Origin: Macrostomum lignano
Taxonomy: Eukaryota
DNA length: 64,000 nt
NCBI GenBank assembly: GCA_002269645.1
Contig: NIVC01000010.1
Coordinates: forward strand, 2,325,443-2,389,442
Direction: 5' to 3'
A model generated the notes under the pieces. The model did not search any database. It was not told where the DNA came from and saw only the letters and a program-made list of their open reading frames with translations. Every line of letters starts with the position of its first letter. The stretch's first letter is position 1. The translations under genes and the position numbers were made by a program. Shown here one piece after another: positions 1,187 through 50,661 of the stretch.

Positions 1187-1602
1187 CCGCCTGTGTGTGC
1201 ACGCATTCTTCGGACCGTTGACTGACTACGCCATGACGCAGTTCATTCCGTTCGCCTACCACAGCGCCATCCCCATTCTCACCTCCGGATCTGTGCACCA
1301 TTCGTTCAGCAATAAAACTGAGACAACTTTAATTCGAGTGACTCCGTTCGGCGCGCAGGACTTCGGCCACATGATTCAGCAGTTCATGCAATCGCATCGA
1401 TGGCTGAGGGTCGCCGTCATCTTCAAATGGCCAACTCACCGACCCGAGGGTGACATACCGGAGACGAGATCCGTTTGCACCTGCATCATGGACTGGTGCA
1501 TCCGGCAGTCCAAGTCGGTTAACATCGACTGCGTATTCGAGGTTGTGGGCTCCATGACCGCTGAACAAGTTCTGCTGACTAAGGTTGGCAGCGGCAAGAG
1601 CT
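1187..1602 (+). CDS. Receptor guanylyl cyclase variable cassette A: exon encoding part of an ANF-receptor-type ectodomain; its upstream signal-peptide exon was not found in the window
   Basis: Translation VHAFFGPLTDYAMTQFIPFAYHSAIPILTSGS..LIRVTP..HRWLRVAVIF..CTCIM matches the NPR-family ectodomain pattern (vdafFGP..dY..PilT.G; RWxxvavi). Acceptor ctcgcag|1187; donor aag agc t|gtgagt (phase 1) at 1602/1603. Confidence 0.75.
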
Positions 1603-2578
1603 GTGAGTGCACTGTTGGTTGTTGTTGTAGCCTTGGTCAGATTGCCAGCACGACCAGGGAAGGTGCTGGGCTGGGTTTTGTGTCACTCGGTTCACGTTAT
1701 GGCATTTAGCGACGACGCCTAAAGGCGCTGCCAAACCGTCCCCAGCGACGAACCGGAGGTCTAACCGGGAGGTTTTCAACCGGGCTTGGGACCGGCTTTG
1801 GCGGAGTTTGCACTGTTGGTAACGGATGTTTGAATGCGCACCATTAGTTGAAGGTGTTCAGTGTGGGAAGTCTCATCTTTCGTGACTGTATGTTATCACT
1901 GGATCACACTGGGTCTCCTGAGTTCCTATAGGTTTTCTGAGTTCTAGACGCTGGGTTTATTTCTAATACATTGTTCGTACTCAAACCAATTTTTTGCGTT
2001 TCCTTGTTACTACTGCCAGTAGAAACTATCCGATATCTTTAGAGTTTTTTCTTGCTTCAGCAGAGCAAAGCCAAGAGCGAGAACGCGCAACTGGAAATTT
2101 ATTTAAGCTTGCTGACGCGGTGTAAAATTTTATTTATTTACAAATATGAAAACAGTCTCATGGTGAGTTTCCTGATTGTCATTCTTATTGCCATCACCAA
2201 GTTTATCGATAAGTTAACCGACTCTTCTAAGTTAAGACTTCGCGGAAGTCACAGACTACTCAAGCAGAAGGACTCAACTCTAACAAGTGATGTAATTCTA
2301 GCTTGTGTGGCTTGTCCGGATGTCATTTCGCAGGTTTCATCTGGTGGATTTGGCTAAACTATCATTATTTGAGACCGGTCGACAAGCGAAATTACTGGTA
2401 TTTTCCATGAAATGGATAAATTGAAAATGGAAAATCTTCACTGCTAAAAAAATCCAAGTTGCGCTGATAGAAGTCTGCTTGTTTCCTGCTTTTCAAAAGT
2501 TTTTCCCTTCTATCTTGACGAAACTGTGAGAACAACTCAAGCCAAATATAGACGTTCAGGTGGGATATTTTCAATTTA

Positions 2579-4523
2579 ATCCTCCTACTGTAGCCTTGAA
2601 CTGGGGTGCCATTGTCAGCTGAGTCCTCCTACTGTTGCCTTGAACTGGGGTGCCATTGTCAGTTGAGTCCTCCTACTGTAGCCTTGAACTGGGATGCTTT
2701 TGTCAGCTGAGTCCTCCTACTGTAGCCTTGGACTGGGGTGCTTTTGTCAGCTGAGTCCTCCTACTGTTGCCTTGAACTGGGGTGCCATTGTCAGTTGAGT
2801 CCTCCTACTGTAGCCTTGAACTGGGGTGCTTTTGTCAGCTGAGTCCTCCTACTGTAGCCTTGGACTGGGGTGCCATTGTCAGCTGAGTCCTCCTACTGTA
2901 GCCTTGAACTGGGGTGCCATTGTCAGCTGAGTCCTCCTACTGTAGCCTTGAACTGGGGTGCCATTGTCAGCTGAGTCCTCCTACTGTAGCCTTGAACTGG
3001 GGTGCCATTGTCAGCTGAGTCCTCTAGCTACTGTAGCCTTGAACTGGTGTGCCATTGTCAGCTGAGTCCTCATATTTCAATCTGGGGTGCCATTGTCAGC
3101 TGAGTCCTCATATTTCAAACTGGGGTGTCATTGTCAGCTGAGTCCTCATATTTTAAACTGCGGTGCCATTGTCAGCTGAGTCCTCATATTTCAAACTGGG
3201 GTGCCATTGTCAGCTGAGTCCTCATATTTTAAACTGCGGTGCCATTGTCAGCTGAGTCCCACTACTGTAGCCTTGAACTGGAGTTCCATTGTCAGCTGAG
3301 TCCTCTAGCTACTATAGTTTTGAACAGGGTGCCATTGTCAGTTAAGTCTCCCTACTGTAGCCTTGATCTGGGGTGCCATTGTCAGCTGAGTCCTCATATT
3401 TCAAACTGCGGTGCCATTGTCAGCTGAGTCCTCATATTTCAAACTGGGGTGTCATTGTCAGCTGAGTCCTCATATTTTGAACTGCGGTGCCATTGTCAGC
3501 TGAGTCCTCATATTTCAAACTGGGGTGCCATTGTCAGCTGAGTCCTCATATTTTAAACTGCGGTGCCATTGTCAGCTGAGTCCTCATATTTCAAACTGGG
3601 GTGCCATTGTCAGCTGAGTCCTCATATTTCAAACTGGGGTGCCATTGTCAGCTGAGTCCTCTAGCTACTATAGTTTTGAACTGGGTGCCATTGTCAGTTA
3701 AGTCTCCCTACTGTAGCCTTGATCTGGGGTGCCATTGTCATCTGAGTCCTCATATTTCAAACTGCGGTGCCATTGTCAGCTGAGTCCTCATATTTCAAAC
3801 TGCGGTGCCATTGTCAGCTGAGTCCTCATATTTTAAACTGCGGTGCCATTGTCAGCTGAGTCCTCATATTTTAAACTGCGGTGCCATTGTCAGCTGAGTC
3901 CTCATATTTTAAACTGCGGTGCCATTGTCAGCTGAGTCCTCATATTTTAAACTGCGGTGCCATTGTCAGCTGAGTCCTCATATTTTAAACTGGGGTGCCA
4001 TTGTCAGCTGAGTCCTCATATTTCAATCTGGGGTGCCATTGTCAGCTGAGTCCTCATATTTCAAACTGCGGTGCCATTGTCAGCTGAGTCCTCATATTTT
4101 AAACTGCGGTGCCATTGTCAGCTGAGTCCTCATATTTTAAACTGCGGTGCCATTGTCAGCTGAGTCCTCATATTTCAACCTGCGGTGCCATTGTCAGCTG
4201 AGTCCTCATATTTCAAACTGGGGTGCCATTGTCAGCTGAGTCCTCTAGCTACTGTAGTTTTGAACTGGGTGCCATTGTCAGTTAAGTCTCCCTACTGTAG
4301 CCTTGATCTGGGGTGCCATTGTCAGCTGAATCCTCATATTTTAAACTGCGGTGCCATTGTCAGCTGAGTCCTCATATTTTAAACTGCGGTGCCATTGTCA
4401 GCTGAGTCCTCATATTTTAAACTGCGGTGCCATTGTCAGCTGAGTCCTCATATTTTAAACTGCGGTGCCATTGTCAGCTGAGTCCTCATATTTTAAACTG
4501 CGGTGCCATTGTCAGCTGAGTCC
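2579..4523. repeat. 38/44-bp minisatellite derived from the DEG/ENaC stop-codon region, with higher-order duplications
   Basis: Proximal unit ctgagtcctcatattttaaactgcggtgccattgtcag (38 bp); distal unit ctgagtcctcctactgtagccttgaactggggtgccattgtcag (44 bp). A variant block recurs at ~3305, ~3660 and ~4245. Confidence 0.95.
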
Positions 4524-5497
4524 AGCTGTCCCGGCGACAGCCTCGATTGTCTGACCGACTTGCTCTCCGTTGACGAAGACTTCCTGTGACCGTCAGTGGA
4601 CAGCCGTCGGCAGAGCAGCTGCAGCAGCTGAAGTCCCAGATCAAGTAGCTCGACAAGCCACACAAAGGTGAGGCCGATCCACATGGATAGCAGGCCGCCA
4701 ACTTGGCTGAAAGTTGATGCCAAAGTTTGCACCGGCTTCTCCGCAATCTGTGTCACTGAGAAATCCTTTCTAGTCACTTTCAGCGTGACAAAGCTGTCGC
4801 TGATGAGGCCGAGCTGCTTCAGCAGAGAGCTGGCGTTGGCGGTGCTGTTAGGGATCAGCTGACGTACCTGCTCGTACATCTCGGCCAGCTGCCACTCCTG
4901 GCTGCTGAGCTCCGCACTCGAGTTGCTGTTCAGGTCCAGGTCCTTGTCGTTGGCCAGCTCATATTTGAAAATGTTGGCCAGCATTGACTCCCGAGGCCAC
5001 TGCGACTGGGTCGTTGCTATCTGATAGGAGAAGTGGCTGCACGGCTCTCGGCAGCCGCTGTCAAAGTTGGCAAAGGCTCCCAGCATGCCGCATCGAGTCC
5101 GGTTGATGGCGCGCAAGAGGCCGGAACTGCTGAAGTTTATCGTGTTGTCAGCGTCGAGGCTCTCGCAGACAGTCGGTTGAACCGACGAGATCGGAGCGTG
5201 CGGCAGCAGGAAGGCGAAGCTGCAGTTGCAGTCGGATTGAATTCGGCTGAGCAGGCTGAGCTTGTGGCAGGCTCTGCTGGTGTAGGCGAACAGCTTCTGA
5301 TGGTTGCGGTGCTCCTGCCGCTGCTGCTGCTGTTGTTGGTTCTGGTTCGAATTCTGAGCACTGCTCGAGTCGGTTCCCTCGGTGTTGGCGATGTTGAGGT
5401 AACTAGGCGGGTTGGGGTCGCAGTTGCCGTAGGGTGGGCCGAGTCTGGTCCAGTTCAGGGTAGCGAATGTTACTTCGGTCAGGGTGCCGGGGTACAC
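4493..5497 (-). CDS. DEG/ENaC (amiloride-sensitive sodium channel family) subunit, 3' coding exon
   Basis: RLGPPYGNC motif, Cys-rich thumb (YTSRAC..Q..CNC..C..C.EPC..Y), TM2 TFSQVGGLLSMWIGLTFVWLVELLD. Acceptor ctaac..acccag|GTG at 5498/5497 joins the upstream exon to give GFT-VYPGTLT, the family's GF.V.PG..T motif. Confidence 0.92.
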   Translation of the reverse strand: MYPGTLTEVTFATLNWTRLGPPYGNCDPNPPSYLNIANTEGTDSSSAQNSNQNQQQQQQRQEHRNHQKLFAYTSRACHKLSLLSRIQSDCNCSFAFLLPHAPISSVQPTVCESLDADNTINFSSSGLLRAINRTRCGMLGAFANFDSGCREPCSHFSYQIATTQSQWPRESMLANIFKYELANDKDLDLNSNSSAELSSQEWQLAEMYEQVRQLIPNSTANASSLLKQLGLISDSFVTLKVTRKDFSVTQIAEKPVQTLASTFSQVGGLLSMWIGLTFVWLVELLDLGLQLLQLLCRRLSTDGHRKSSSTESKSVRQSRLSPGQLDSADNGTAV

Positions 5498-5562
5498 CTG
5501 GGTGGGGGCGACGTTTGAGTTAGCCAGAAGTTAAGGTCATCGCTGGCTGTGTTTAGTAGTAT

Positions 5563-6651
5563 CTGATTTGTCTTTGAATTGATTTGTGTCTGAATTGGTT
5601 TGTGTCTGAATTGGTTTGTGTCTGGATTGATTTGTGTCTAAATTGGTTCGTGTCGGAATTGGTTTGTGTCTGAATTGGTTTGTGTCTGAATTGGTTTGTG
5701 TCTGAATTGGTTTGTGTCTGAATTGGTTTGTGTCTGAATTGGTTTGTGTCTGAATTGGTTTGTGTCTGGATTGGTTTGTGTCTGAATTGGTTTGTGTCTG
5801 AATTGGTTTGTGTCTGAATTGGTTTGTGTCTGAATTGGTTTGTGTCTGAATTGGTTTGTGTCTGAATTGATTTGTGTCTGAATTGGTTTGTGTCTGAATT
5901 GGTTTGTGTCTGAATTGATTTGTGCCTGGATTGATTTGTGTCTGAATTGATTTGTGTCTGGATTGATTTGTGTCTGAATTGATTTGTGTCTGAATTGATT
6001 TGTGTCTGAATTGATTTGTGCCTGGATTGATTTGTGTCTGAATTGATTTGTGTCTGGATTGATTTGTGTCTGAATTGATTTGTGTCTGAATTGATTTGTG
6101 TCTGAATTGATTTGTGTCTGAATTGGTTTGTGTTTGAATTGATTTGTGTCTGGATTGATTTGTGTCTGAATTGGTTTGTGTCTGAATTGATTTGTGTCTG
6201 AATTGGTTTGTGTCTGAATTGGTTTGTGTCTGAATTGGTTTGTGTCTGAATTGGTTTGTGTCTGAATTGGTTTGTGTCTGAATTGATTTGTGTCTGAATT
6301 GGTTTGTGTCTGGATTGGTTTGTGTCTGAATTGGTTTGTGTCTGAATTGGTTTGTGTCTGAATTGGTTTGTGTCTGAATTGGTTTGTGTCTGAATTGGTT
6401 TGTGTCTGAATTGATTTGTGTCTGAATTGGTTTGTGTCTGAATTGGTTTGTGTCTGAATTGGTTTGTGTCTGAATTGATTTGTGTCTGAATTGATTTGTG
6501 TCTGGATTGATTTGTGTCTGAATTGATTTGTGTCTGAATTGATTTGTGTCTGAATTGATTTGTGTCTGAATTGGTTTGTGTCTGGATTGATTTGTGTCTG
6601 AATTGGTTTGTGTCTGAATTGGTTTGTGTCTGAATTGATTTGTGTCTGGAT
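5563..6651. repeat. 16-bp minisatellite (TTTGTGTCTGAATTGG)n filling most of the DEG/ENaC intron
   Basis: Directly visible tandem array inside the inferred intron 5498-6923. Confidence 0.95.
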
Positions 6652-6923
6652 TTATGCGGTGCCATAACAAAACAGTTTTTTAAAAATATTCGGGTCAAGA
6701 ATTTTCTTTGCACTGCACCCTTAGGCAATATAAATATGAAATCATTTAATATTCATGCGTCACAATGGCAAAATTATTCCTATCTGATAATAACGCTCTC
6801 CCATAATTTGAGAACTACTCAACAGCTAATTAACTTATTCGATGGTGGTCGCATCTGCGTGGATTAGCACGAAATCCGAAATGGATGAATATTACATAGA
6901 CCCACAGCGGGCAGCCAACGTAC

Positions 6924-8885: not shown

Positions 8886-9234
8886 CAGGGACGTCGCCAT
8901 GGATTTTATGGGGGGGATAAGGCTAAGAATTCAACATGTACATGTACATGACTAAATTCCTGCATTTCCATCAATTTGAGAATCGTGTTGTCAGCGCTCA
9001 TTTTGGCGCCGCAGGCACTCATTTTGGCGCCGCAGGCATTCCTTTTGGCGCCGCAGGCACTCATTTTGGCGCCGCAGGCGCTATATTTTGGCGCCCAGAA
9101 GAAAATTTTTGATTACCACAACGGGTTACAATGTGGGGTGGGGGGACAAAGCATTGGCATGTCCCCCCCCAAAGCTTTTACTGGGGGGACATGTTCCCCC
9201 CCCCCTGTCTCCCCCCGGGATGGTGACGCACCTG
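8886..9234. mobile_element. Non-autonomous TIR element (hAT-like MITE) with internal 21-bp repeats
   Basis: Ends CAGGGACGTCGCCAT and (reverse complement) CAGGTGCGTCACCAT, 12/15 match; four tcattttggcgccgcaggc units at ~8998-9095; TSD only degenerate. Confidence 0.55.
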
Positions 9235-9390: not shown

Positions 9391-9780
9391 TGGTGACATT
9401 TATTTTAGTTTTATACTTCAGAAAATTAGCGTTTTCTTTTTATTATCTTGTGTTTATCATAACTTGATCTACAAGTTTCTGAAGTTAAATTCTGCATCGA
9501 AAAATCTGTTTAAAGAAAAAACTTGCAATCAGCGCCCCTCCCCGTTTGGGGAGGTAACAAAGATTGGAATACATTTTTTCTGACCTCTTAGCAATTCTCC
9601 CGTAAGCCTTGGCATCTCAGCAATTCCCCTTGAGAAGGCTTTGAAGCTGTGAAGCAGCTGCAAACTTTGATTGCCGCGTTTCATATTTCTGTCATCTGCC
9701 TGCCGCTTAAATCGCTACTAAACTAGTCTACTTATGTTAGTAATAAGAGTGAGTCATTCAATCCCAGATTCATTCCATTT

Positions 9781-11152: not shown

Positions 11153-12504
11153 CATAACTCCAGTCCCACCACTCCATTTTACGGAATCCAGTCCCTTGAA
11201 TCCAGTTTCTCGAGTATTAGCTCCCTATGTCTAGTACTCCAATCGCAAAACATCTCTCAAATCCAGGCTCTCATATCAGTTCCTAAATTCGGCCCCCTCA
11301 AGTCAGCTTCCTTCCTCAAAAGTCTACATAAGTGTCAATAACCTACTTAATCTGCTCCTCAAATGTGCTTGGAAGTTCTTTTCTAGGAAATCTACAGACG
11401 GCCTGACTTCCTTATCATCTCAAAACCATTAGTTTTGCCCGTAAGATGATGCGGTAAATTTCCTGACAGGCAGGTGAGTTTCTGGCTTAGCAAAAGGATA
11501 GTGTGAAGGCTAAGGATTGATAGCCAGAAGGTCGCAGAAGCATTTATTACTCCACCACTCTTTTCTACTGAAGTGCTGAAAGCTTACTGCGTTTAATTTG
11601 ACAGTCTCAGGTGGTGATAAAGGCGAAAAAATTATTTATTCGACTCTGAAAAAACTCCTAAACCAAGAGTAGGGCGCGTTTTAAACTCAGAAATTAGCTT
11701 CTTCTACTTGTCTTTGCTTCGTCTTTCAACGGGCATTTTGACAAACGCAACCAATAATTTGATGTTTTCGAGCGGCAATGAACTCAGCGAAATTCGTCAG
11801 CAAAATCTGACGGCAAAATGCTGAAAAGCGCGCATTGAACTAATTACAGGGCTCCTTGTTGCGAAATTATAGGATAAGTAAATATCTACATCTAATAGTC
11901 GTACAGTTTCACTATCCTTCCATATAATCTTCCTTATACTTCTATTGTGATAAACAGCTGAGTTAGAACAGAGAGGATCGGCTTTGACGCACATTCAAAT
12001 TCAACGCCATAAACAAACTACGAAGTACTGAGATTGAAATGCTTTCAGCAAGACAGTTTAGAAAAAGCTGTACACACATTTTATCAAAGCATTAAGCCAG
12101 CCATATATCAATTGTTAAGCGCATCTTTCAGATCACCACTCCCCTAGGCAACGAGATGACAAGACGGGCAGGCAAATTCGGTGTGACATCCTAACCCGCG
12201 CGTTACAGTTCTTCAAGCGAAGCACTGGCTTGGTATAGCAGCATGCATGCAGAAGCGTGTAGGAGTGCAAAAACTGAGTTGCTGAGGCGTTAGGCACGAC
12301 GGGCCCCTCATTGGCTCGGAGGCTGGCTTTTGAGGTCACACTGCGACGCGAGTGTAAGAGAAGAGAGTGCGAGGGAGATAAGGACAGAAAGAGAGGCAAC
12401 CTCAGAAGCGTCACTTTAATAAACACTGGCGAATTTTCCTACCTAAAGCCATCGAATTGTCTGACTTTTGTCACCTCAATTCAAAGACTCAGCGCACATA
12501 CCTG

Positions 12505-23695: not shown

Positions 23696-24454
23696 CAACT
23701 TACATTAATAATAAATTAGCCAAGTTTCTAGCTAAAAGGAACCATTTCCTCGACATATATTACTTTAAGTACCTATCCATAAACCAAAAATCTAGCTAAA
23801 AAATTGCTTAAGCATTCTAACAATTTATGCCACTATTTGAAGGCCTGGCAGTTGAAATCGCTGTCAGGAGATAAGCTGCTGATAGATCAGGAAATTGAGC
23901 CGCAAGAGGAAAGATATTAAATATTGATTTTTGTCAGTAGCAAAATTCTTAGATTAAAATCTCCTCTTTTTGAACAAAAAAATCTTTCTTCACCAGCTAT
24001 TCAAAGAGATTCAAGGAACCGATTCGGCGGAAAAGTGCAACCCAGCTGGAGTCAGTATTGATCCTCACTTGATGCTGGGGTCCCCCTGCCTCCCCTATTT
24101 GACTTCCGTTTCAGATAAAATCCCCTACCTTGCATAATTGCAGCCCTGACAGATCAGTTCTGTTAGCCAGTTGATAATAAATTTTCTATCTCACCTCAAC
24201 TGTACAGGGAATTAACAGCAGGGCAGCACCCGTATTATTAGCATAGCAACCCAATCCCCATTGGTCACATACTCTGTTAGCCAATCCAGCCTTACAACAA
24301 AACCGATCAAGCGCAATACTTTGCCAACAAACCTCTAGCTAAACGTCGCGCGCCGCGTGCCCACAGGGACAAAATTTTACATGCATATTCGACAATATTG
24401 AAACTTCAAAAAACAACAAATACACTAAAATAAATACTAACAAGCAACATTGAA

Positions 24455-24804
24455 ATGCATTCTGAGCTCACGGTGGCAGTTGGAATCTTTGCAATCATGG
24501 CTGTCAATCAATTTCAATTTGCTGTCGCTATTAAGCCGAAATTTCGACTGCTAGCTTTGCTGCCGTTCAACACGACGCATCAGTTCCGGGCCGAACTCAT
24601 CCAGCCAAGTGTACCATTCGCTTTGGAGACTTTGAGAAGACTGAAACTCACTGAGCAGTTCGATTTGCAGATTAGCTTTGTGAACTCGACCTGCTCAAAT
24701 CTTGCCGCACTGCCAGCCATGGAGCACCTGTACAGAGACGCCGTTGATGGATTTGTTGGTTTAGGATGTCCTGAGAGTTCGAGTCAGATTGTGCAGTTCT
24801 CTGG
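24455..24804 (+). CDS. Receptor guanylyl cyclase variable cassette C, exon 1 (signal peptide and start of ANF-receptor domain)
   Basis: ATG 24455, hydrophobic leader, FRLLALLP..IQPSVPFAL..NSTCS..VDGFVGLGC (family pattern). Donor tct gg|gtaagt (phase 2). Confidence 0.8.
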
Positions 24805-29003: not shown

Positions 29004-29347
29004 AGTAAAATGGAACAAAGCGGTGGTGAGCATCGGCTCAGTGGAATCTGTTTTTCGCGACACAACCAAAATTCAATACATCAACAATATTTTTGTTCGA
29101 GTGAGCTTCGATGGCGCGGAATTGATGGAATCTATTCTAAGAATGATATTTCTTAGAAATGGTTGGCAAAGGTTTTTCGGCTTGTTCAGTTTGAATTACG
29201 GCTACGCTAACGAAGGCTGCAACTTGCACATTATGGATTTGAATCGGATGCGCAAGGAGCTGGGCATTGAGGCCGAGTTCTTGAGCGTCAGCAGGCTTGA
29301 TCAGCTGCCGATGGCGTTTCGTAGAAAGATCGCTGCCCAGTACTCCG
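29004..29347 (+). CDS. Receptor guanylyl cyclase variable cassette C, exon 2
   Basis: Acceptor ttgcag|a is phase-compatible with 24804, giving FSGVKWNKAVVSIGS..FRD..FVRV..RNGWQRF..GC (NPR-like WN.pviS.G pattern). Donor tac tcc g|gtgagg (phase 1). Confidence 0.8.
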
Positions 29348-32300: not shown

Positions 32301-32528
32301 TTTTCCCTTCCTTCTAACCGATACAGCAGCAGCTGCTGCAGCAGCGGCCAATCAGATTCTTCCATAGCTGTCTAGCTGGGATCTTTCCAATCGTCACTCG
32401 CCATTTAATATATGAAGGCCCACTCGCCACCTTAGCCTACTTTCTTTGCGCTGCTCAGTAGACGGTATCCCCCCTTTAGTCAGGTTATCGAAGACTACTG
32501 ACAGACGATTTAGTAGGAAAAAGTCACA

Positions 32529-32829
32529 ATGACGTCGAAAATTTCGTTGCTAATCATATTTCTGGCTGCTGTTGAATTAAGCCAGGCCCAAGCGGATGGC
32601 AAAAAGACACTTAAAATAGCCATCTTTCTGCCCGCACAACTGCACGGAGTGTCCGGAATCAGTTTGGAAGCTGTTCAACCTGTTGTCGACGTGGCTTTGA
32701 AGTCGTCCGGCTTAGATGAAATGTTGCCTGGTGTGCAAATTCAAATTATTTCTAACGACAGTCAGTGCGACTATCGGTACGCGCCCGTGATTGGACTGCT
32801 CCTACTCAAAGATATCGATCTGTTGCTAG
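32529..32829 (+). CDS. Receptor guanylyl cyclase cassette D, exon 1 (signal peptide and ANF-receptor domain start)
   Basis: MTSKISLLIIFLAAVELSQA signal peptide; LKIAIFLP..VQPVVDVAL..NDSQCD..DLLL. Donor cta g|gtgagt (phase 1). Confidence 0.85.
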
Positions 32830-37400: not shown

Positions 37401-37512
37401 TTGTCGTACTCTGCGCCGACCCGGACACTGTCCGAGAGATCATGATCAAGGCTCACGAGCTGGGCTTCATCAACGGGGAGTACGTCTTCTTCAATATTGA
37501 CCTGTTCAGCAG
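37401..37512 (+). CDS. Receptor guanylyl cyclase, first constant exon
   Basis: tttatttcag|tt gtc gta ctc tgc gives VVLCADPDTVREIMIKAHELGFINGEYVFFNIDLFS, a strongly NPR-like motif. Donor ag|gtgaga (phase 2). Confidence 0.9.
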
Positions 37513-40610: not shown

Positions 40611-41173
40611 CGAACGCTTGACCTCTCGACCATGGTACCGGAAGACCGACTCAAACGAAAGAAACGCCGCCGCCTCCGTGGCCTACCGAGCCCTCATGAC
40701 CATCACATTGCGCAAGCCAAATAGCACCGAATATCGCGATTTTAGCGATAAAGTCAAAGCAGCGGCTAAGCAGAATTATAGTTTCGAATATCCGGAAGAG
40801 GAGGTGAACAGTTTTGTCGGTGCATTCCATGACGCTGTACTGTTGTACGCTCTGGCCATTAATGACACCCTGGCAACGCACGGTCTTGCTGGCATCTCAA
40901 ACGGCTCGTTGATCACCTCCCGAATGAAGAGCCGCACGTTCAAAGGCATTACTGGCACGGTAAGCATCAACGCTAATGGAGATCGGAATGCCGACTACTC
41001 GTTGCTAGACATGGACAAGAACACCAAGAACTTCACCGTGGTGGCGCACTACTATGGTAACACTAAACGATACGAGCTAGTCAGTGGCAAAGTGATCGAT
41101 TGGTTCAGCAAGGACAATTTACCGCCACCAGACGTGCCCAAGTGTGGCTTTGACAATTCACGCTGCAAGAAAG
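40611..41173 (+). CDS. Receptor guanylyl cyclase constant exon (C-terminal ectodomain)
   Basis: RPWYRK..AYRALMTIT..VGAFHDAVLLYALA..TFKGITGTVSINANGDRNADYSLLD..PPPDVPKCGFD. Acceptor cgcag|c; donor g|gtgcga. Confidence 0.92.
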
Positions 41174-41359: not shown

Positions 41360-42072
41360 ACCTGTCCGAGATGGCCATCTATGCTGTAATCGTTCTATTA
41401 GTGCTAATATGCGTCCTATCCGTGCTGATCGGTGTCATTTATCGGAAACTGCGCCTAGAAAGCGAGCTGCATGCCATGAACTGGCGCATCGCTTGGAGCG
41501 AGCTGGAGCCGACCGAACGACTCGCCGCGCGTCGACGCAGCATGGCTAGTCAGAGTTTGCGACTTCGCGAGCGTCCATCAGACAGCGGCGCTCAACGAAC
41601 TCAAACTTTTGGAAATCACCAACAGGAGGGCGAAGAGGCCCAGCCGCTCAACCCGACGCCGAATGAGCAGCAGCAGCAGGATGAAGATCCGGCGATCGCA
41701 CCCAAGGGTAGCGATGTAGTTAGCAGTAATGATTCTGTTGAGACGATCGCGGGGGTGCCATTGAGCCAGATTCCTGTGGCTCAGCTATTCGCTAAAACTG
41801 CCTATTACAAGGGCAATCTTGTAGCCTTAAAACAAATCTACCTGAGAAACAAGCGCCTCGAGGTGAACAACAAAATTCTAATGGAGATTAAACGGGTGAA
41901 AGATCTGGCTTCGGACAACATCGTCCGATTCATTGGAGCCTGTTTAGACTCGCCGAACGAGTGCTTGGTGACTGAATATTGCCCAAAAGGTTCGCTTCAA
42001 GACATTCTTGAAAATGATAATCTCAATTTAGATTGGATGTTCAAGTTCTCCCTGATGCTGGACATATGTCGG
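41360..42072 (+). CDS. Receptor guanylyl cyclase constant exon (TM helix, juxtamembrane region, start of kinase-homology domain)
   Basis: TM AIYAVIVLLVLICVLSVLIGVIY; RKLRLESELHAMNWRI; YKGNLVALK; NIVRFIGAC; TEYCPKGSLQDILEN. Splice phases consistent. Confidence 0.93.
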
Positions 42073-42398: not shown

Positions 42399-42567
42399 GG
42401 CATGATCTATCTTCATCACAGCTTTGGATCTCATGGCAACCTAAAGTCGTCCAACTGTCTGGTTGACTCCAGATTCAGCCTAAAAATTGCCGACTTTGGC
42501 CTGCACTCGCTTCGAGGCAGCAAGGAGCTCAAAGAGCGGGACGATTCCGATTATTCCTCGTATAGAA
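42399..42567 (+). CDS. Receptor guanylyl cyclase constant exon (kinase-homology domain)
   Basis: [29 protein letters not shown]; HGNLKS replaces the catalytic HRD motif, as is typical of rGC pseudokinase domains. Confidence 0.93.
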
Positions 42568-45099
42568 GTGAGCAGTTGTGCATTGATGATTGATTTTTCT
42601 GGCGGAGTTGAATCAATTACAAGGATAGCTCATACACTCATAGTTAGGCTTTCTCTTAGACTCCACAGGCTCGTAAAGGATAGTACGTACCGTTTGTTGT
42701 CGATAACCGAAATATTTCCACCACATTTAGTATATGATAGGCAACTATACAGAGCTAGCCACTCATTAAAAACTACAAAACAAGCATGTATTGAGATGCT
42801 AATCAGGTTTTACATACAGCACTGCATTCGTGAGTCGTGTTTTTGCGCCTCCCCGATCACGCCTACGATATTTAGCAGAACTTCGATATACGAAGTAAAA
42901 CTACGAGTATTTTCCATAGTCTCGTCCGCTTTGTACACACAGATAGCTCGCTATAAACAGTATTAGGCAGTTTATAGTATTATAATATTTTAATATTCTA
43001 GACCTGTCTACTGGAACTTAAGAATTCCAGTCTGATTGATCATTCCCATCAAGCGACTTTAAATCACTGATGCAAAAAAGTACATGTCAACAATCAAACT
43101 GCTAGTATAGACAGAGAGCAGATACTCTCAGAGAGGTCAATTGATTGCTTCTCGCAGACTGTCTATAAGACTAGCTTAGGCCGAGCCCTGCCTGACATTC
43201 GTACGCTAATGAAGAATTCGGCGGACCGTGCAACCAGAAATGAACTGCTGCACTTTGCGAGACCAGCAGCACTTGCTGAGGCTTATGGACTGAGGCTACA
43301 ACGATCAACCTCGTTGATGAGGAATTAGCTTGGACGTTGCTAGAGAGAAACTAATCAGAAAACTGCAGAAATTTCTCAGATTCGACATTTTATTATAAAT
43401 TTTCTGACTCTAAGGGATTGATGATGGCTTTAGTCGAGAAAAGTACTTTTAAGACGGCTGTAGTGAGGGCCGAAAATACAAGCAGGTTAAAGACTCAACG
43501 ATGCAGCCATCGAAAAAGGCCAGTTTTTCTATGGCAACACAACTTTGTAAAAATTTCTACATAAGTAAAAATTTGATTGTTAATTTGATTAAAATTAGGG
43601 AAAAATTTTTTAGAAACTTAAATAGAATATGCGGTAGACATTGGATACTAGTTTTTTAAAAAATGACGCACAATTATAACAAAAATCAAGGCTTTTTGGC
43701 AGAGAAAATGCATCTAAGAAGAGACAGGAGGAACTGATTTTGGTTCCATTACTCTGTCTCATGCCAGCTTTAATTTAGCTAATAAACTCATAAAGTCACT
43801 TCGAATTCTAAGCAGACGCCGGAAACGAATATCGTGAACGCATTCTTGACAGCTTTAGCATAAATTAAATTCTCCACGTCCTTATATATGAGCAAAGTCC
43901 GCCATTTATACGTACTTTATTCACAAGTTTCGACAGAAAAAAACAAAAAGCAAACAACCCGGCACATATTGCATAGGTTCTGGCTGAAAATTTGTTTAAC
44001 TAGCATAATGTTCTGCCTTTACCCTGAGTACACTTCGAGAGCAGCTTCAAAGTTAAGAAAGTAAGCGTCCACCAACTTTGGATATGCCAATTTTCCGATG
44101 CTTTATTAGGCCAATCCTCGTGGGAGTTTGGCTGAGTTTACTCAAACTGGCCTTAAGTTGTGACCCTGTTAAAAATTGATGAGGAGTAAGGAGTTAGGGC
44201 AATTGACTCGCTTTACTGTGACAGTACACTAGGAACGATATGTATGGTGGCAGTATAATTAAGGTATTCATATTGCCTCTGATAGCATAGGGAATTGAGA
44301 AAATTGTTCTTCAAAAACTAAAAGTATTAAATGACTGATTTCTCAGGCTCTAAACACTAAAGATTTGTTTTGCCACCTCTCGCAACGTCTATAAGATTCA
44401 AAAGAATTGATCCCACTTTTGGTCAGAAAACAAAAAAATCATTTTTCTAGCATAAATCAACTTGCTCTGCTTTCTGCTTTGCAGGACAATTCTACGGTAA
44501 GGCCTGCAGTAAAGATTTAAAGTTTCCAAAAATATCTATATGACCTTCAATGGTACCCTATTCGCGTACATATATTTCGTAAATCTTTGTTTAACACGCC
44601 CCCCCTTAGGCCTTAGCTGTATATTTAAAGAGTAACAAATTTTCAACACTTTCTTCGTACCCCTCTATGCGTTACGAGCGTTCGCAAAGCATATAGTCAT
44701 GCCATAGCTAAATTAAATTTTGGCTTGTACTCGTATTTTATTTACTTTGTATATTTTATCTGTTTTTGCTTTACTTTAATTAATTTTTGCACCTGATCCT
44801 CCATACCATGCCTCGCATGTAAACCAAAATAACACCCAAAGTCAAAATAGCAATAAATTTTCTCTCCCGTGCGCCGCACTATTTTTTATTCAATTTTCTT
44901 CGTAGTCATTTAAGTATGAATAGTAAATTTTTTTATGGGAAAAAATTAACATGAACATAAAATAATCTTGTGGAGAACACATTGTCGCAGATTAGTGATA
45001 TGAACTTTTAGGCAGTTATCAACAAAGCAGTTACCAAGCATTAATTTTGCAACAATAGAATGCCAATAAGTTTTCTTTTTGCCGTCCGCACCGTCGCAG

Positions 45100-45261
45100 A
45101 CAAACTGTGGACAGCGCCCGAACTGCTGCGGAATCCGTCCACTGCGCCAGCGGAGGGCACCCGCGAGGGAGACGTGTACAGCTTCGGGATCATTGCCCAG
45201 GAGATTATCTATAGGAAGGGCGTCTTCTATATTAGCGACTACGATTTTCCTGAACCGCAGG
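45100..45261 (+). CDS. Receptor guanylyl cyclase constant exon (kinase-homology domain)
   Basis: [24 protein letters not shown]; acceptor cgcag|, donor g|gtaagt. Confidence 0.92.
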
Positions 45262-45675
45262 GTAAGTGAGGAACTCGGTTAAAGACACTAATATTAGTAG
45301 GTGTGCACGAATTTTTAAACAATCGTATAACGATGATAAAAAATCTACCCAAAAATTATTGACCTAAAATATAACGATAGTGACCATTTGAGAAATAATG
45401 CGAAATATTTAAAATATTTCTTTTAAAAGCAGTTTAGCTGCAGCAAGTTACTACGAGCTAGCTAATTCTTCTTAGTACTCGTACTTACGCCAGTATGCTT
45501 TAATCGTCATTATTCCTCTTTTTAGGAAGATTTACCTAGAGTAAATAATATCCAAAATTATTAACTTTGGCCAAGAAATTAATGGCTGCTATGAATTTTT
45601 ATTAACAAATGCTATAATTTTATGCCTAAAAATCAATATTTTTACTTCGAAATATTGAACATTTTTTCCGACCAG

Positions 45676-46142
45676 ACATCATCGAGAAGATCCGCCAGCC
45701 AGTTGGTTCGCAGCCGCCGTTTCGCCCGAGCCTCAGCCAGGAGCTGGTTGACCTGGACGGGGAGCGAGTCCAGGCCCTCCTAGGCATCGTGCGCAGCTGC
45801 TGGCACGAAGATCCGAATGCTCGGCCGAATTTTAACGCCGTCAAAAGTCGAATTAGCCGATTTAATAAGGATGCCGAATCTGGTAACATTTTAGACAACC
45901 TGCTCAAACGAATGGAGCAGTACTCTAACAATCTGGAGAGCCTTGTTGCTCGGCGAACCGACCAGTACCTGGAGGAGAAGAAGAAGGCAGAGAACTTGCT
46001 CTACTGCATGCTGCCAAAGCAGGTGGCAACCACTCTGATGAAGGGTGAATCAGTCACGGCGGAGTGGTTCGACAGTGTTACGATCTATTTCTCGGATATC
46101 TGCGGATTTACGGCGCTGTCCAGTGAGAGCACACCCATGGAG
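45676..46142 (+). CDS. Receptor guanylyl cyclase constant exon (end of KHD, coiled-coil hinge, cyclase start)
   Basis: CWHEDPNARPNF; NILDNLLKRMEQYSNNLESLV.RT..YLEEKKKAENLLY.MLP; VTIYFSDICGFT. Confidence 0.94.
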
Positions 46143-46768
46143 GTAAGCGATTAGCACTTAGCATCACTATCAACAACACACTCTGATCTGCTTTTATCGA
46201 AACTGGATCTGGGATCCTTTTCTATGCTCTTCTTCTTCCCGGGTTTACTTATTGACTTCCGGGTCCCATGCATTACTCGTATCTTGGAGTTCATCCTGTT
46301 TACTGTCCGGTGCAATATCGAACCCGCTTAGCTATCAATAGTTTACGTCATAAACCCAGAAGATCTGTCTTCTAAGTAACCTATTGTGCAGCTAATAAAA
46401 TTAAGCTTAGGCTCGTTGGCTAAACGCAAGTAGGTCGAACTTGTAGGATTAAGGCCGACACCACTAAACTTGGATTGTTCAGATTATTGCTTGGATTTTC
46501 GCTTTTGCGTTTATAAATACCTTTGTAGTCCTAAAACGATCTTCCATTATGTTTATTAGACTTTTCGGCATAGCTCAAGCCTAGGAATCTCTATTCAACG
46601 GTACATGCTGGTGTAAGTCATCCCTAATAGAGACGTTAAAAGAGTATTACTGAGAGGATTTTACACGACTTTCTTTGTAAAATTTCCTATTCTAGCTACC
46701 CTATGGTCGAGTGACGAACCTTTTCGACTACACCTAGCTATAGTAACTTTTTTCCACCTCAATCCCAG

Positions 46769-47012
46769 GTGGTGAACCTACTCAACGACTTGTACACGCT
46801 GTTTGATCGCATCATCGAGCAGTACGACTGTTACAAAGTCGAAACGATCGGCGACGCCTACATGGTCGTATCCGGCCTACCCGGCCGCAACGGCAATTTG
46901 CACGCGCGCGAGATTGCTCGGATGTCGTTGAGCTTCTTGAGGAACATATTCTCGTTTAAGATTCGGCACAAGCCCGATGCGCAACTGAAACTGCGAATTG
47001 GAGTTCACTCAG
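46769..47012 (+). CDS. Receptor guanylyl cyclase constant exon (cyclase domain)
   Basis: [37 protein letters not shown]; contains the guanine-specifying Glu. Confidence 0.95.
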
Positions 47013-47892
47013 GTGAGAAAGCTTTTCAATAATACTATGGTTTGACTTACCAAGTAGATCGGAATGGTGTTTATAACTTATATCGTGCAACCGTGGAACC
47101 GAAAAAGTTCCCTTTGAAAACAGCACTGATCTCATGAGACAAGTTAGCTGAGCTTCATGCGGCTTAGCTTAGGGGTCCCTGGGGTGCAAATATTGCGCTG
47201 CAAGTTAAGTCCACAGTCATTCATTGCACATCGTATCTACATGTAAATGTCTACATGAGAGGTGCCAAGCGCCCTCTTTTCAGGGGGCGGGCCGTGCCGC
47301 CGCCCTTAAATATTGTTCTAATGGCCGGTTTGTTATACCAAGCGTCGAATTTCCTGATTGGATGAGCTCGAATTGACTAGCTTGACTCTGATTGGCTAAG
47401 CTCCAGACTCCAAACCCTCTCCACTGGGCAACCTCTCAGACCTCAGCAAACTTGACAGGTGAGGTCATAAATAATAAAAGCCCCTGTGGTGCTAAAAGTG
47501 ACAGGTAGTTAGTTGAATCAAAGTCGACTCACACAGGTTAACCTCTAGACGTAAAGAACTTGAAAAAAGTAACCTCAAGGCGAAGTACAGTCTGTCTTAG
47601 GAAGCAGTAAAGCAGCTCCTAAATTAAATAATGCATAAATACCCAGAACTAGCCTACTATGAGTAAGAGAAGAAAATATGAAAAAAATCCGATGGGATTC
47701 TAATGATTTAAAATCTGTTTTCCTCATCAATATAACCAGCATCCAAAAATTTCCAACAATGTACAAGCCTTGTGATCATAAAAAATGCATTTGAGCTATA
47801 AATAAGCTAAAATGAGCGGTGTAAACGAGCCCAGCCTATAGTATAGAACTTTAAGTAAATCGCATGTACTTATATGTATATTCCAGTTACGT

Positions 47893-48262
47893 CAAGGGGT
47901 CGGCAAACTTTTTACCTCAAGGGTAAGATAGAGAATCTAATGCATGACTGCGGGCCATAGGAGAGGAGAGTAACAGAAAATAGAGAAGCGAGAAGATCAG
48001 AGAGATAGAAGCAAGGAGAAGCGAGGGAAGATAAGGGATAGGAGAGCAGAGAGAAGAGGAGAGGGGAAGAGAGAGAGGAGAGGAGAGAGAACAGGAGAAA
48101 AGAGAGAGGAGAGAAGGGAAAAAAGAAGTGGTTAAAAGAGAGAAAACAGCTGAGAAGAGACAAAGCTTAAGCAGGCCGGATTGCTATTGTGAAGTTCGAA
48201 TGGACCCGATAAGCCGAATCGAGTCTCGAGAGGCTTCGTGGGCCTGAGTTTGCCGACCCCTG
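47893..48262. mobile_element. hAT (Charlie-type) MITE
   Basis: TIR aggggtcggcaaact / agtttgccgacccct; identical 8-bp TSD AGTTACGT with central TA at 47885-47892 and 48263-48270; GA-rich interior. Confidence 0.88.
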
Positions 48263-48338
48263 AGTTACGTCATCATATTGAAATGCCATAATTCTTATTA
48301 TATGTACAAGCTGTAGCTCATGCCACTGACCCACTTAG

Positions 48339-48529
48339 GTCCCGTTTGCGCCGGAGTCGTCGGCTTAAAGATGCCTCGATACTGCCTATTCGGCGACACG
48401 GTGAACACGGCCTCCCGGATGGAAAGCAACGGCCTGCCGCTAAAAATTCACATTAGCTCGTTGACGTACGCCATTCTAGAAGAGATCGGCGGTTTTGTGA
48501 CAACTGAACGCGGCGAAGTTGAGATGAAG
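48339..48529 (+). CDS. Receptor guanylyl cyclase constant exon (cyclase domain)
   Basis: [46 protein letters not shown]; GC-specific Cys and catalytic Asn/Arg present. Confidence 0.95.
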
Positions 48530-49363
48530 GTTAGTGCGGAAAAATTTGCAAAGCATTTAGAGTTCTTGAAATGTGGTCCTCGGCCCTCTGTGCATTTTAT
48601 TGCAATAGTTATTCAGAGAAAGTGAATTACTACTACAGCAAGAATATCTGAGCATATTAGATCTATTTTTTCCATTTGAATTAGATGTAAGATTCAATAC
48701 ACTCTTACCATTGCATTTCCCTGGTAGCATAGAAATTCGACAAAATCACATCAACTTATTCACGTTTTTACAGGTCTTTCGAAACAAACCAGCGCTTACC
48801 GAAACGAACCTACAAAAACAAACAACATCAATTTTATTGATATTGATAGACATATTCAATTAGCGTATTGGTAGATAAAAAATAAGCAATATAAACTAAA
48901 TATCAATTCACTCAGATAAATAATTTTAACTTACATTAGATATAGCTGCATCAAGCTGCAGACGAACCTTTCGAGTTTTATTATGGAAGTGCTCGTATAA
49001 AAAATATTTTACATATCTGTATCTGTATTATACAGATATTTAGCAATAATTTTACGAGGGTATGCACATTTAGCTATTTGTACAAAATTGTGCATGCATG
49101 CGGTGCATTTAGAAAAGATGCCTTTTTGCGTTCTATTTGAAGCGACACACGCAGTGGAAACGAGCCAAGCCGAAAGACATGGTTTGCCATAAACATGTGC
49201 AGAAAACCAGAAACCATGCAATTTTGTCTAAACTGCATTCTTCTTGAGCTAACTGAAGATGCACCACGAGCAATACACTGTCATAACGCTGTCAAACAAA
49301 AACCACATAAACAAAACAGTCGAATCACAGCAAATCGGTGTCAGTATCAATGTTCATGATTTG

Positions 49364-50427
49364 CTACAACTCTTGAAAGTGAATGTCGTCCAGATTTAGG
49401 CAGCGCTGAACGTACGTCTGTGTGTAGTTCACCCACTGCAGACGCTTCGCCGCCGTCATGCTGCTCATCGCCAACTGAACCTCACGCTTCGGAGTGCGCA
49501 TCCTATGCTGATGCAGTGTGATGCCTTGCGCTGCAGCCTTTTGCCTGTCTGTCACCTGGACCTGAATGCCGTTTACATTCAGCCGTATCTTCAGGTCGGC
49601 CTTGAACGCACCACCTGCCATCTCTGCCGGGTTCAGATGAGGAAGGACGAGTAGGTTGGGAGAAAATCTGTGGTGGTGGCCGGCGTGCATCCCTGGCGCA
49701 TTTGAGTGTGCACGAGCACCATCAGAGAGAAGCGCGAATGGTGGATCCACCAGCTCGTCAACTTCAGAGACGATCATCCTAGAAAGTTTTCATTCTTGAA
49801 TCTGCCTTCGATTACCGAGAAATGCAAAAGCCCTAGTTTCTGTGAAATGGCCAGGCAGATGGTGAGGTTCTGGTCACATTGCCCCGCTCCGAGAGGCGTC
49901 CGAGAGCTGTCCAGAGGTTCACTCCAAAGTCGTCCATGAACAGAAGGTGCTCCTGGCTGCCCTCATCTACGTCGTAATGACCACCGCACATGCAATAGGC
50001 GAGCCTCCTTTGTCACCGGCGTGTTCCACTCAATGGGAACCTGACGCAAAAGCTTCAGGGGTTATCAACTGGCCATCCAGAGCGCAACTGATGGCGCTGC
50101 AGCTGATGTTCAGTTTCTCATTCTTGTCTTGCTGTAGGTGCGAATTCATCTGCGCCAGTGTTGCAGCTGGGTAGCTGGACATAAACTCTCGATCAATCTG
50201 TCCATCACTGGCTGCATAAGCTTCTTCCTTTTCTTCACTTCTTCCTTCGGCAGAGTTTCAGTTCGTCCCGTCTCCACATACGTGGCAACAATGTTTCTCA
50301 CCGACTGCTTAGCGAATCCCTGCATCCGACCAAGGGTTTTCCAGTCGTAACCGTTTTGGTTCACGATTCTCTCACGGTCTACCAAGCTGATTTTGGAATA
50401 AGTTTGGACATGGCCTCTATGTGCCAT
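49364..50427 (-). pseudogene. Decayed IS630/Tc1-mariner-type DDE transposase in the last cyclase intron
   Basis: HTH-like N-terminus (SVRNIVATYVETGR); MDDFGVNLWTAR; LSDGARAH..(RFLPTYSSFL)NPAE spread across several frames with stops. Confidence 0.7.
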
Positions 50428-50589
50428 GTCTCAATTTCTCGATCTTGTACGAGCTAGAAGCTATTCTTGGGCAGACCAATTTAAACGCAGCTCAAATTGC
50501 TTTCTGCTTTCTGCTAGGTCTTGTAGTAGCTGGCAACATGATAAATTCACCGCCAATTGGCTAAACAATGTGTTTCATAACAATTTCAG

Positions 50590-50661
50590 GGCAAGGGTCT
50601 CCAGAAAACGTACTGGTTACACGGAGAAAATGACAATATTGTTGATCCGCCAACAAACTAG
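50590..50661 (+). CDS. Receptor guanylyl cyclase terminal coding exon
   Basis: aatttcag|GKGLQKTYWLHGENDNIVDPPTN*; the canonical GKG..TYWL end. AATAAA at ~50887. Confidence 0.9.
   Translation, partial: GKGLQKTYWLHGENDNIVDPPTN

Follow-up and report, generated by a model that had tools for sequence, protein, structure and literature searches.

A receptor guanylyl cyclase locus with four candidate alternative 5′ cassettes upstream of one constant signalling part

Introduction

Receptor guanylyl cyclases are usually viewed in terms of one gene, one ectodomain and one ligand class, with diversity arising by duplication; 27 such genes are found in C. elegans (PMC5225109). The 64-kb stretch of DNA analysed here, which we refer to as the window, raises the question of whether a single gene of this family can instead offer several ligand-binding parts. 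The original prediction had proposed that four divergent N-terminal coding units feed one set of cyclase exons, comparable to the vertebrate UGT1A locus, in which alternative first exons are spliced to the shared exons 2-5 and the variable part is the N-terminal, substrate-recognising half of the enzyme and the constant part the other half.

Results

Four N-terminal units, here called cassettes A to D, lie in tandem on the + strand at the predicted coordinates, and all of their exon ends checked out:

1187..1602, + strand: cassette A, exon 2; no ATG, AG acceptor, phase-1 GT donor, 138 residues
12505..13312, + strand: cassette B, single exon; ATG, signal-like peptide, phase-1 GT donor
24455..24804, + strand: cassette C, exon 1; ATG, signal-like peptide, phase-2 donor
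29004..29347, + strand: cassette C, exon 2; phase-2 acceptor, phase-1 GT donor, cassette profile E 8e-4
32529..32829, + strand: cassette D, exon 1; ATG, classical signal peptide, phase-1 donor, counterpart in M. lignano P0001
33423..33845, + strand: cassette D, exon 2; phase-1 acceptor, phase-1 GT donor, 56% identity to P0001

Cassettes B, C and D each have their own ATG, preceded by an in-frame stop and followed by a hydrophobic signal-like peptide. The phase-1 GT donor at the end of every cassette leaves one base of the split codon and joins the acceptor at 37401 in frame, giving GKS-F-VVLC, KFS-V-VVLC, QYS-V-VVLC and EVR-L-VVLC for A, B, C and D, respectively. The donor and frame predicted for cassette A hold, but the window does not contain a complete unit, only its second exon, which starts at an AG acceptor; the first exon lies upstream of the window and is present in the M. 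lignano protein P0002. B is the only single-exon unit: A is entered through an acceptor, and acceptors also lie inside C (29004) and D (33423). The interval between A and B harbours an unrelated gene on the opposite strand.

The constant part was rebuilt as nine exons, all with AG/GT borders:

37401..37512, + strand: K1; 112 nt, phase-1 acceptor common to all cassettes, opens the second ANF_receptor half (VVLCADPDTVREIM...)
40611..41173, + strand: K2; remaining ectodomain to the juxtamembrane CGFD motif
41360..42072, + strand: K3; transmembrane helix, juxtamembrane region, start of the kinase-homology domain
42399..42567, + strand: K4; kinase-homology domain
45100..45261, + strand: K5; kinase-homology domain
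45676..46142, + strand: K6; end of the kinase-homology domain, linker helix, start of the cyclase domain
46769..47012, + strand: K7; Guanylate_cyc domain
48339..48529, + strand: K8; Guanylate_cyc domain
50590..50661, + strand: K9; end of the cyclase domain, stop codon

As predicted, the exons for the transmembrane helix, kinase-homology domain and cyclase occur once only, at 37401-50661: the constant part and eight full-length homologues, used as tBLASTn queries, revealed no such exon within 1603-37400. The rebuilt products measure 1166 aa for B, 1128 for C and 1138 for D, 897 residues of which are shared, in agreement with the prediction. Pfam assigned PK_Tyr_Ser-Thr (E 7e-38) and Guanylate_cyc (E 8e-70, profile positions 2-183 of 183) to the constant part, and a single transmembrane helix, read straight from the sequence, follows CGFD (PKCGFDNSRCKK, then AIYAVIVLLVLICVLSVLIGVIY). 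The whole length of the ectodomain can be aligned with human NPR1 (E 2e-55); in chain 8tg9_A, the human NPR1 ectodomain, the junction between cassette and constant part corresponds to about residue 208/209.

In Pfam searches with the cassettes alone, the N-terminal portion of the ANF_receptor domain is matched by C (E 1e-10) and D (E 5e-12), A reaches 24.1 bits, slightly below the cut-off of 25.4, and B has no match, so that the ANF-receptor identity proposed for B is recovered when it is joined to the constant half or through its orthologue, but not from the cassette by itself. When a cassette is joined to the constant half, a single continuous ANF_receptor (PF01094) match results (E 1e-38 to 4e-48), covering profile positions 3-352 with C and D, 19-352 with B and 51-352 with A, and the score rises from 107 bits for the constant half alone to 131-165 bits. 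A profile built from the cassettes of other species and searched against all six-frame ORFs of the window matched exactly the six exons listed above (E 1e-21 to 8e-4) and no other ORF. Among each other, the cassettes gave no BLASTP match at E <= 1e-3.

All four cassette types have orthologues in other macrostomid flatworms, at 34-56% identity, and clear orthologues of the window cassettes were found in flatworms only; the searched collections yielded no proteins or contigs of the window species itself. Several of these orthologues come from Macrostomum lignano, a laboratory species for which transgenesis is established and transcriptomes have been published. Cassette A shares 46% identity over 123 aa with the A-type part of M. 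lignano P0002, B 34% with the cassette of P0003 (a B-type cassette is also present in M. lignano P0101), C 56% with M. lignano P0100, spanning both exons, and 51% with P0101, and D 51% with M. lignano P0001. The C-type orthologues were found by exhaustive HMMER search; a word-indexed homologue search with B alone or C alone gave no match, a limit of its sensitivity, as the other searches found the orthologues. Window B and P0003 have 87 identical residues, and 60% of these are encoded by a different codon, which shows that the protein has been conserved although silent sites diverged. The AlphaFold model of P0003, a natural B-type ectodomain (pLDDT 80, pTM 0.81), superposes on the human GC-A ectodomain with a TM score of 0.85 and also on NPR-C structures.

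The join of D to the constant part is present in the M. lignano model P0001, and no flatworm sequence that we saw joins an A-type or C-type cassette to K1. Other M. lignano models fuse B-type with C-type sequence and A-type with D-type sequence, which is consistent with the same order of cassettes as in the window, and the C-type models P0100 and P0137 run past the donor into the intron. Misassembly or collapsed duplicates were rejected as a source of the array: the cassettes are dissimilar, each is orthologous to a different cassette elsewhere, and in M. lignano models, too, B precedes C and A precedes D.

A contig from the Logan assembly of SRR28338163, from a related species (L001), contains a B-type cassette, K1 and K2 joined without introns, with a 153-nt 5′ UTR ahead of the cassette and GTGAGT at the K2 donor. 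In the window, the introns at these two joins measure 24 kb and 3.1 kb. L001 is an RNA-like contig that might represent an assembler graph path and not one molecule. A second contig (L002, from DRR639055) includes a C-like cassette, but its end is intron-like and it is uninformative on junctions.

Upstream of the three ATGs in the window we noticed putative promoter elements:

12308..12316, - strand: NF-Y-type CCAAT box (RRCCAATSR), 197 nt upstream of the B ATG
24258..24266, - strand: NF-Y-type CCAAT box (RRCCAATSR), 197 nt upstream of the C ATG
32346..32354, + strand: NF-Y-type CCAAT box (RRCCAATSR), 183 nt upstream of the D ATG

These three (at -197, -197 and -183) are among 14 matches to RRCCAATSR in the 64 kb, a total only mildly above chance (8 +/- 3.4 expected), and their distance to the ATGs was a post hoc observation. 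Their near-fixed spacing upstream of B, C and D may reflect separate promoters. An alignment of the three upstream regions revealed no common element besides the CCAAT boxes, and no good splice acceptor was found just upstream of the three ATGs. Comparing the 500 nt after each cassette donor with the 588 nt before K1, we found no Dscam-like docking and selector complementarity; the longest stretches (9-12 nt) were within the shuffled range and differed in docking position. A point missed in the original prediction is that transcripts starting at upstream cassettes must skip the internal acceptors at 29004 and 33423; since exon 2 of D is entered in phase 1, in-frame joining from an upstream donor would be possible. 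No feature enforcing this skip was found in the window.

The same layout is visible outside flatworms. In Biomphalaria glabrata, the RefSeq isoforms X1, X3 and X4 share 858 identical residues after a junction located at the same place as in the window and are only 21-25% identical before it; like L001, each isoform contains a single cassette. ANF_receptor-only ORFs are nested inside the Biomphalaria gene, which extends over 483 kb, the situation in Crassostrea is similar, and mollusc genes of this type span 157-483 kb. In the annelid Dimorphilus gyrociliatus, two single-exon cassettes with ATG and phase-1 donors lie upstream of a K1-like exon of 112 nt that is entered in phase 1, as is K1 in the window. 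The family has a common junction signature, (I/V)VVLCAxxD..R after the split codon. Many genomes annotate the gene as separate cassette-only and constant-only models, the former being ANF_receptor proteins of 230-310 aa that end exactly at the phase-1 donor, and models divided at this junction also occur in sea star, hemichordate, millipede and tardigrade. The mollusc and annelid gene layouts rest on automatic annotations, often split, and these genes, there named ‘atrial natriuretic peptide receptor 1-like’ in molluscs, have no clear orthologues of the window cassettes, although family, junction and the arrangement of several cassettes feeding one constant part are the same. The occurrence in other flatworms, molluscs and an annelid indicates that the layout is real and old.

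Discussion

The proposal that alternative 5′ cassettes are placed on one constant module gained support from the conservation of the cassettes in macrostomids, L001, the Biomphalaria isoforms, Dimorphilus and the CCAAT boxes. Judging from the sequence, the locus, presumably from a macrostomid flatworm, is most probably a single receptor guanylyl cyclase gene of the NPR/GCY-28 type, with four alternative 5′ cassettes that have their own promoters and are cis-spliced to one constant part. Each cassette would encode the initial 230-270 residues of the ectodomain, made up of a signal peptide and approximately the N-terminal half of the ANF_receptor ligand-binding domain, and would be transcribed from its own promoter, after which its final phase-1 donor would be cis-spliced to 37401 and intervening cassette exons skipped. 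Every mRNA would then encode a complete receptor, in which one of four N-terminal halves precedes an identical second half of the ectodomain, transmembrane helix, kinase-homology domain and cyclase. As a cassette supplies approximately NPR-A residues 1-208, its choice should set ligand specificity, leaving the cGMP output unchanged. We infer mutually exclusive use, a cell-type-specific choice and different ligands for the individual cassettes.

Other readings of the locus were weighed against this one. If the cassettes are real but the route to the mRNA differs, they could be part of one long, alternatively spliced transcript starting upstream of A, or separate RNAs could be trans-spliced as in arthropod sDscam, lola and mod(mdg4). 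An intron precedes cassette A, whose start lies outside the window, the two internal acceptors are harder to square with plain cap-proximal splicing, an opposite-strand gene intervenes between A and B, and macrostomids use spliced-leader trans-splicing. Nevertheless, we regard this as unlikely, because the ATGs of B, C and D lack a good acceptor just upstream and have a CCAAT box at 183-197 nt, the 5′ UTR of L001 shows no resemblance to the spliced leader of M. lignano, and no complementary docking sequence common to the cassettes was found. Still less probable is that only D, nearest to the constant exons, is used and that A, B and C are relics of partial duplication without protein expression. 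D does score best against Pfam, its signal peptide is the most classical of the set, and its join is the one found in P0001. However, A, B and C retain open frames and right-phase splice sites, with start codons kept, and each has an open-frame orthologue despite the diverged silent sites; moreover, a B-type cassette is joined to constant exons in L001, and the boxes of B and C lie at the same distance as that of D.

The upstream cassettes could also be separate small genes for secreted half-ectodomain proteins or decoys that are never joined to the cyclase, as might be concluded from the many stand-alone annotations and from the two C-type models that continue through the donor. Yet a lone cassette covers about half of the ANF_receptor profile and is thus unlikely to fold by itself, every cassette donor is in the one phase compatible with K1 in both flatworm and annelid, the cassette-only proteins stop exactly at the donor, as read-through gene calls would, and the join is seen in L001 and in the Biomphalaria isoforms, which makes this explanation very improbable indeed.

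A single gene with alternative cassettes resembles UGT1A in having tandem, same-strand 5′ coding units, each with its own start and donor, ahead of one downstream exon set. The UGT1A units are single first exons without an acceptor, whereas A, C and D are two-exon cassettes, and UGT1A encodes a transferase, whereas the window encodes a receptor cyclase that is split amid a single Pfam ANF_receptor domain. In clustered protocadherins and chelicerate sDscam, variable exons with individual promoters are combined with constant cytoplasmic exons; as in the window, extracellular recognition varies and the signalling part is constant, but those clusters have dozens of units instead of four, and their variable part is a whole ectodomain with transmembrane helix instead of a half-domain. 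Each protocadherin variable exon is preceded by a conserved promoter element, which the CCAAT boxes at near-fixed distance resemble, and variable exons are chosen stochastically in single cells. Mammalian NPR-A, NPR-B and NPR-C have the same domain order as the window protein, but their diversity comes from separate genes, each with one ectodomain to our knowledge.

Within the receptor guanylyl cyclases, a comparable gene is the NPR-like gcy-28 of C. elegans, whose isoforms probably use different 5′ coding exons; several matches in the orthologue group of the window are called gcy-28-like. Separate promoters drive gcy-28.c, which is broadly expressed, and gcy-28.d, which is expressed in a few neurons, AIA among them (PMC9249223, PMC3842693, PMC8816384). 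The accessible literature neither states an ectodomain difference between the isoforms nor describes an array of four divergent cassettes for this gene. The kind of organization is known from UGT1A and the clustered protocadherins and, for receptor guanylyl cyclases, is visible in public annotation; we found no paper describing it for this family in the searchable literature, and it seems to be undescribed there.

One gene here offers several ectodomain halves without BLASTP similarity on a single signalling module, an arrangement kept in flatworms, molluscs and an annelid. Many automatic gene models of the family are split or truncated at this junction. Invertebrate NPR-like receptors are orphan receptors (PMC6878697). 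If different cassettes recognise different ligands, these animals have more receptors than their receptor genes suggest, trees in which one isoform represents each species can, as a result of such models, mix non-orthologous ectodomains, and ligands would have to be sought for each cassette. We tentatively suggest, as a possibility short of an expectation, that the layout of variable ectodomain and constant cyclase is ancestral to Spiralia at least and perhaps to Bilateria, and that cell types choose cassettes through their own promoters, so that one cGMP-producing receptor gene reads several unrelated ligands. If true, this would reveal an overlooked way of generating receptor diversity, and it would help to explain why the invertebrate NPR-like receptors have been difficult to place in phylogenies and to match with ligands.

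Exon structure of the locus

The claimed exons were translated and their borders inspected, and the remainder of this receptor guanylyl cyclase gene was reconstructed from open frames and AG/GT sites. The DNA is eukaryotic, with a G+C content of 43% and numerous minisatellites.

Cassettes A to D (candidate alternative 5′ coding units) and constant exons K1 to K9 (open frames with AG/GT sites)
1187-1602, plus strand, cassette A, starts directly after AG, without ATG
12505-13312, plus strand, cassette B, starts at ATG
24455-24804 + 29004-29347, plus strand, cassette C, starts at ATG
32529-32829 + 33423-33845, plus strand, cassette D, starts at ATG
37401-37512, plus strand, constant exon K1
40611-41173, plus strand, constant exon K2
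41360-42072, plus strand, constant exon K3
42399-42567, plus strand, constant exon K4
45100-45261, plus strand, constant exon K5
45676-46142, plus strand, constant exon K6
46769-47012, plus strand, constant exon K7
48339-48529, plus strand, constant exon K8
50590-50661, plus strand, constant exon K9

Translation bore out the original prediction that B, C and D each begin with their own ATG and a hydrophobic signal-like peptide, and in all three an in-frame stop precedes the ATG. All four cassettes close with a GT donor that leaves one codon base (phase 1, as claimed); because the exon at 37401, which follows a pyrimidine-rich AG, supplies the other two bases of the split codon, each cassette reads on in frame. 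The nine constant exons encode 897 shared residues, and the predicted products of 1166 (B), 1128 (C) and 1138 (D) aa reproduce the numbers given earlier (about 1130-1170 aa). For cassette A, the acceptor, donor and frame stood, but the unit is incomplete, its first exon being absent from the window though present in the M. lignano protein P0002. The cassette-internal introns lie at non-equivalent places and differ in phase: relative to a conserved GP, the intron of A falls about 8 residues earlier and that of C about 14 residues later, the intron of D lies at the G of GPFC, and B has none. The cassettes have evidently had long and independent histories.

Searched alone, C and D align with the first third of the Pfam ANF_receptor ligand-binding domain, A falls just below the cut-off and B has no Pfam match; B can be described as an ANF-receptor unit only when joined to the constant part or by way of its orthologue. 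The constant part contributes the second ANF_receptor half as well as a kinase-homology domain and an entire guanylate cyclase domain, and with its ectodomain half every cassette formed one continuous alignment over nearly the whole ANF_receptor profile, with a gain of 24-58 bits. A profile for which cassettes of other species were the sole source, run against all six-frame ORFs of the window, retrieved exactly the six claimed exons and no further cassette exon. A tBLASTn search with the constant part and eight full-length homologues found no second transmembrane, kinase or cyclase exon, in agreement with the single set predicted. Exact exon retrieval, the lack of a second constant set in this search and the continuous ANF_receptor matches thus confirm the observation of four cassettes and one constant set.

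Other features of the window
4496-7877, minus strand, unrelated DEG/ENaC-type channel gene (Pfam ASC) within the A-B intron
34087-35829, minus strand, 581-aa open frame with RNase H and a reverse-transcriptase remnant in the D-K1 intron
49367-50430, minus strand, open frames of 141 and 94 aa in the last intron
56161-63900, plus strand, second large gene downstream, four open frames of 465-737 aa, extending beyond the window end
274-1135, 3042-4523, 5567-6652, 9780-11165, 14793-15611, 16819-17179, 17812-18160, 21565-21992, 22750-23694, 24984-26979, 28308-28777, 36031-36695, 38862-39121, minisatellites

The two long open frames of the channel gene correspond to positions 1-249 and 269-454 of the ASC profile and are separated by a minisatellite with a 16-nt unit (5567-6652). 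The 581-aa frame is apparently a retroelement fragment, and the 141- and 94-aa frames, which have no Pfam match, may represent a decayed transposon. The last open frame of the downstream gene carries a dynein-related AAA_5 P-loop domain, and its other open frames have no Pfam match. Minisatellites fill the introns of the locus, with units of 4-111 nt in as many as 133 copies; they amount to about 11 kb (17% of the window) and generate long spurious open frames in every frame.

Cassette orthologues and a cassette-constant junction

At a BLASTP threshold of E <= 1e-3 the four cassettes show no match to one another, and each has its own orthologue in flatworm sequences. Cassette A is 46% identical over 123 aa to part of P0002, D is 51% identical to the M. 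lignano protein P0001, C is 56% identical to P0100/P0137 and 51% to the C-type part of P0101 (all M. lignano), and B is 34% identical to P0003, the protein of a relative's contig, with an additional B-type cassette within P0101. The top database matches of the D-type ectodomain are M. lignano proteins (58-61% identity); no closer match was present, and the window would therefore probably derive from another macrostomid. Two of the M. lignano models are composites, a B-type cassette strung to a C-type exon 1 in P0101 and an A-type strung to a D-type in P0002; they look like prediction artefacts, but the strand and order that they imply are those of the window. Conservation is much higher in the constant exons (K1 85-95%, K2 60-69%) than in the cassettes. 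Between cassette B and P0003, 60% of the identical residues are encoded by different codons; since residues remained identical while silent sites diverged, the cassette frames have been maintained, which strongly opposes an explanation of the cassettes as decaying duplicates.

The source of P0003 is the contig L001 (1677 nt, Logan assembly of run SRR28338163). Its 153-nt 5′ UTR leads to an ATG and signal peptide at the head of a B-type cassette, which continues uninterrupted into K1 and K2 across two joins that are occupied in the window by introns of 24 kb and 3.1 kb. Precisely at the K2 donor the contig enters GGTGAGTAA, and this intron-like sequence (1610-1677) brings a stop after two codons. 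Such a form would be expected of a partly spliced mRNA, if the run is RNA. In the window, read-through of K2 (41174-41275) would append 34 residues before a stop, and K2-intron retention would yield a soluble ectodomain without the transmembrane helix, possibly a decoy form. The AlphaFold model of the natural B-type ectodomain of P0003 was confident (pLDDT 80, pTM 0.81) and superposes on the human GC-A and NPR-C ectodomains with a target-normalised TM of up to 0.88, so the most divergent cassette type together with the constant half is predicted to adopt the normal fold.

Similar layouts in molluscs and an annelid

Up to eight isoforms are recorded for many of the mollusc RefSeq genes named 'atrial natriuretic peptide receptor 1-like': some are full-length (1060-1150 aa), and others, of about 830 aa, start from the first Met in the K1 equivalent. 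In Biomphalaria glabrata, X1, X3 and X4 are identical over the 858 residues past the junction and have 21-25% identity before it; a fourth full cassette is found on a UniProt fragment, and the 483 kb gene has more ANF_receptor-only ORFs inside and just upstream. One such ORF occurs in the 157 kb gene of Crassostrea virginica. Annotations made independently for molluscs and a sea star divide the gene between a cassette-only and a constant-only protein, the former terminating exactly at the donor. Two bivalve models, P0007 (Pinctada) and P0008 (Mactra), lack kinase and cyclase domains and instead end, beyond the transmembrane region, in a cysteine-rich tail that carries PF20478, the P2X7 receptor C-terminal domain; either an alternative 3′ end of this gene or fusion with a neighbour could account for it.

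For the annelid Dimorphilus gyrociliatus, whose genome is compact, the layout was checked on the DNA itself (L003).

Dimorphilus features in L003
4784-5531, cassette 1, single exon with ATG, signal-like peptide and phase-1 GT donor
8376-9072, cassette 2, single exon with ATG, signal-like peptide and phase-1 GT donor
9960-10071, K1-like exon, 112 nt, phase-1 entry, length and phase as in the window K1
16839-24204, second receptor guanylyl cyclase gene, complete, with one cassette of its own

The two cassettes are 25% identical to each other and lie 4.4 kb and 0.9 kb upstream of the 112-nt exon. The layout is therefore common to three phyla (flatworms, molluscs and annelids). The second cyclase gene lies directly downstream of the two-cassette gene, and whole-gene and cassette duplication therefore coexist there.

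Proposed mechanism

The splice junction maps to roughly residue 208/209 of the human NPR1 ectodomain (chain 8tg9_A), and the constant part begins four residues ahead of a cysteine that corresponds to the disulfide-bonded Cys213 of NPR-A. In the alignment, a cysteine occupies one common position before the junction in B, C and most of the homologous cassettes and is absent from window cassette D; this cysteine may be the Cys164 equivalent, and the disulfide would then join the variable and constant halves.

NF-Y-type CCAAT boxes (RRCCAATSR) are located at -197 (B, 12308), -197 (C, 24258) and -183 (D, 32346) from the ATG. The motif has 14 sites in 64 kb, one of which (7995) sits directly upstream of the first open frame, at the start of the channel gene on the opposite strand; by our own arithmetic, for a pattern noticed post hoc, the chance of three sites in three given 50-nt windows is ~1e-6. 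Together with the 5′ UTR of L001, these boxes would favour one promoter per cassette, resembling UGT1A and the clustered protocadherins with one promoter per variable unit. One difficulty, not considered in the original prediction, is that transcripts starting at A or B would have to skip the internal acceptors of C (29004, phase 2) and D (33423, phase 1), and no docking/selector complementarity able to enforce such skipping was found at the locus. Out-of-frame joins to 29004 would presumably be removed by nonsense-mediated decay, and joining to 33423, which keeps the frame, would leave the domain malformed. As a cassette provides roughly one half of the binding domain, and every type is conserved but unlike the others, ligand specificity differing by cassette appears plausible.

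Discussion

The prediction of alternative 5′ cassettes on one constant cyclase module is supported by the L001 join, the Biomphalaria isoforms, the Dimorphilus layout and the cassette orthologues. From the sequence evidence, the cassette system is quite probably functional at this locus; promoter choice and ligand diversification are less certain. The isoforms of C. elegans gcy-28 may differ in the ectodomain. Isoforms c and d have separate promoters and different expression (PMC9249223, PMC3842693, PMC8816384). Full-text literature searches yielded no account of alternative ectodomain cassettes for receptor guanylyl cyclases, and two relevant reviews or analyses (PMC5225109, PMC6878697) make no mention of them. 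The architecture is of a known kind and already present in public annotation, and its status as a conserved trait of the receptor family, in which it matters for ligand discovery and gene annotation, seems to have gone unnoticed so far.
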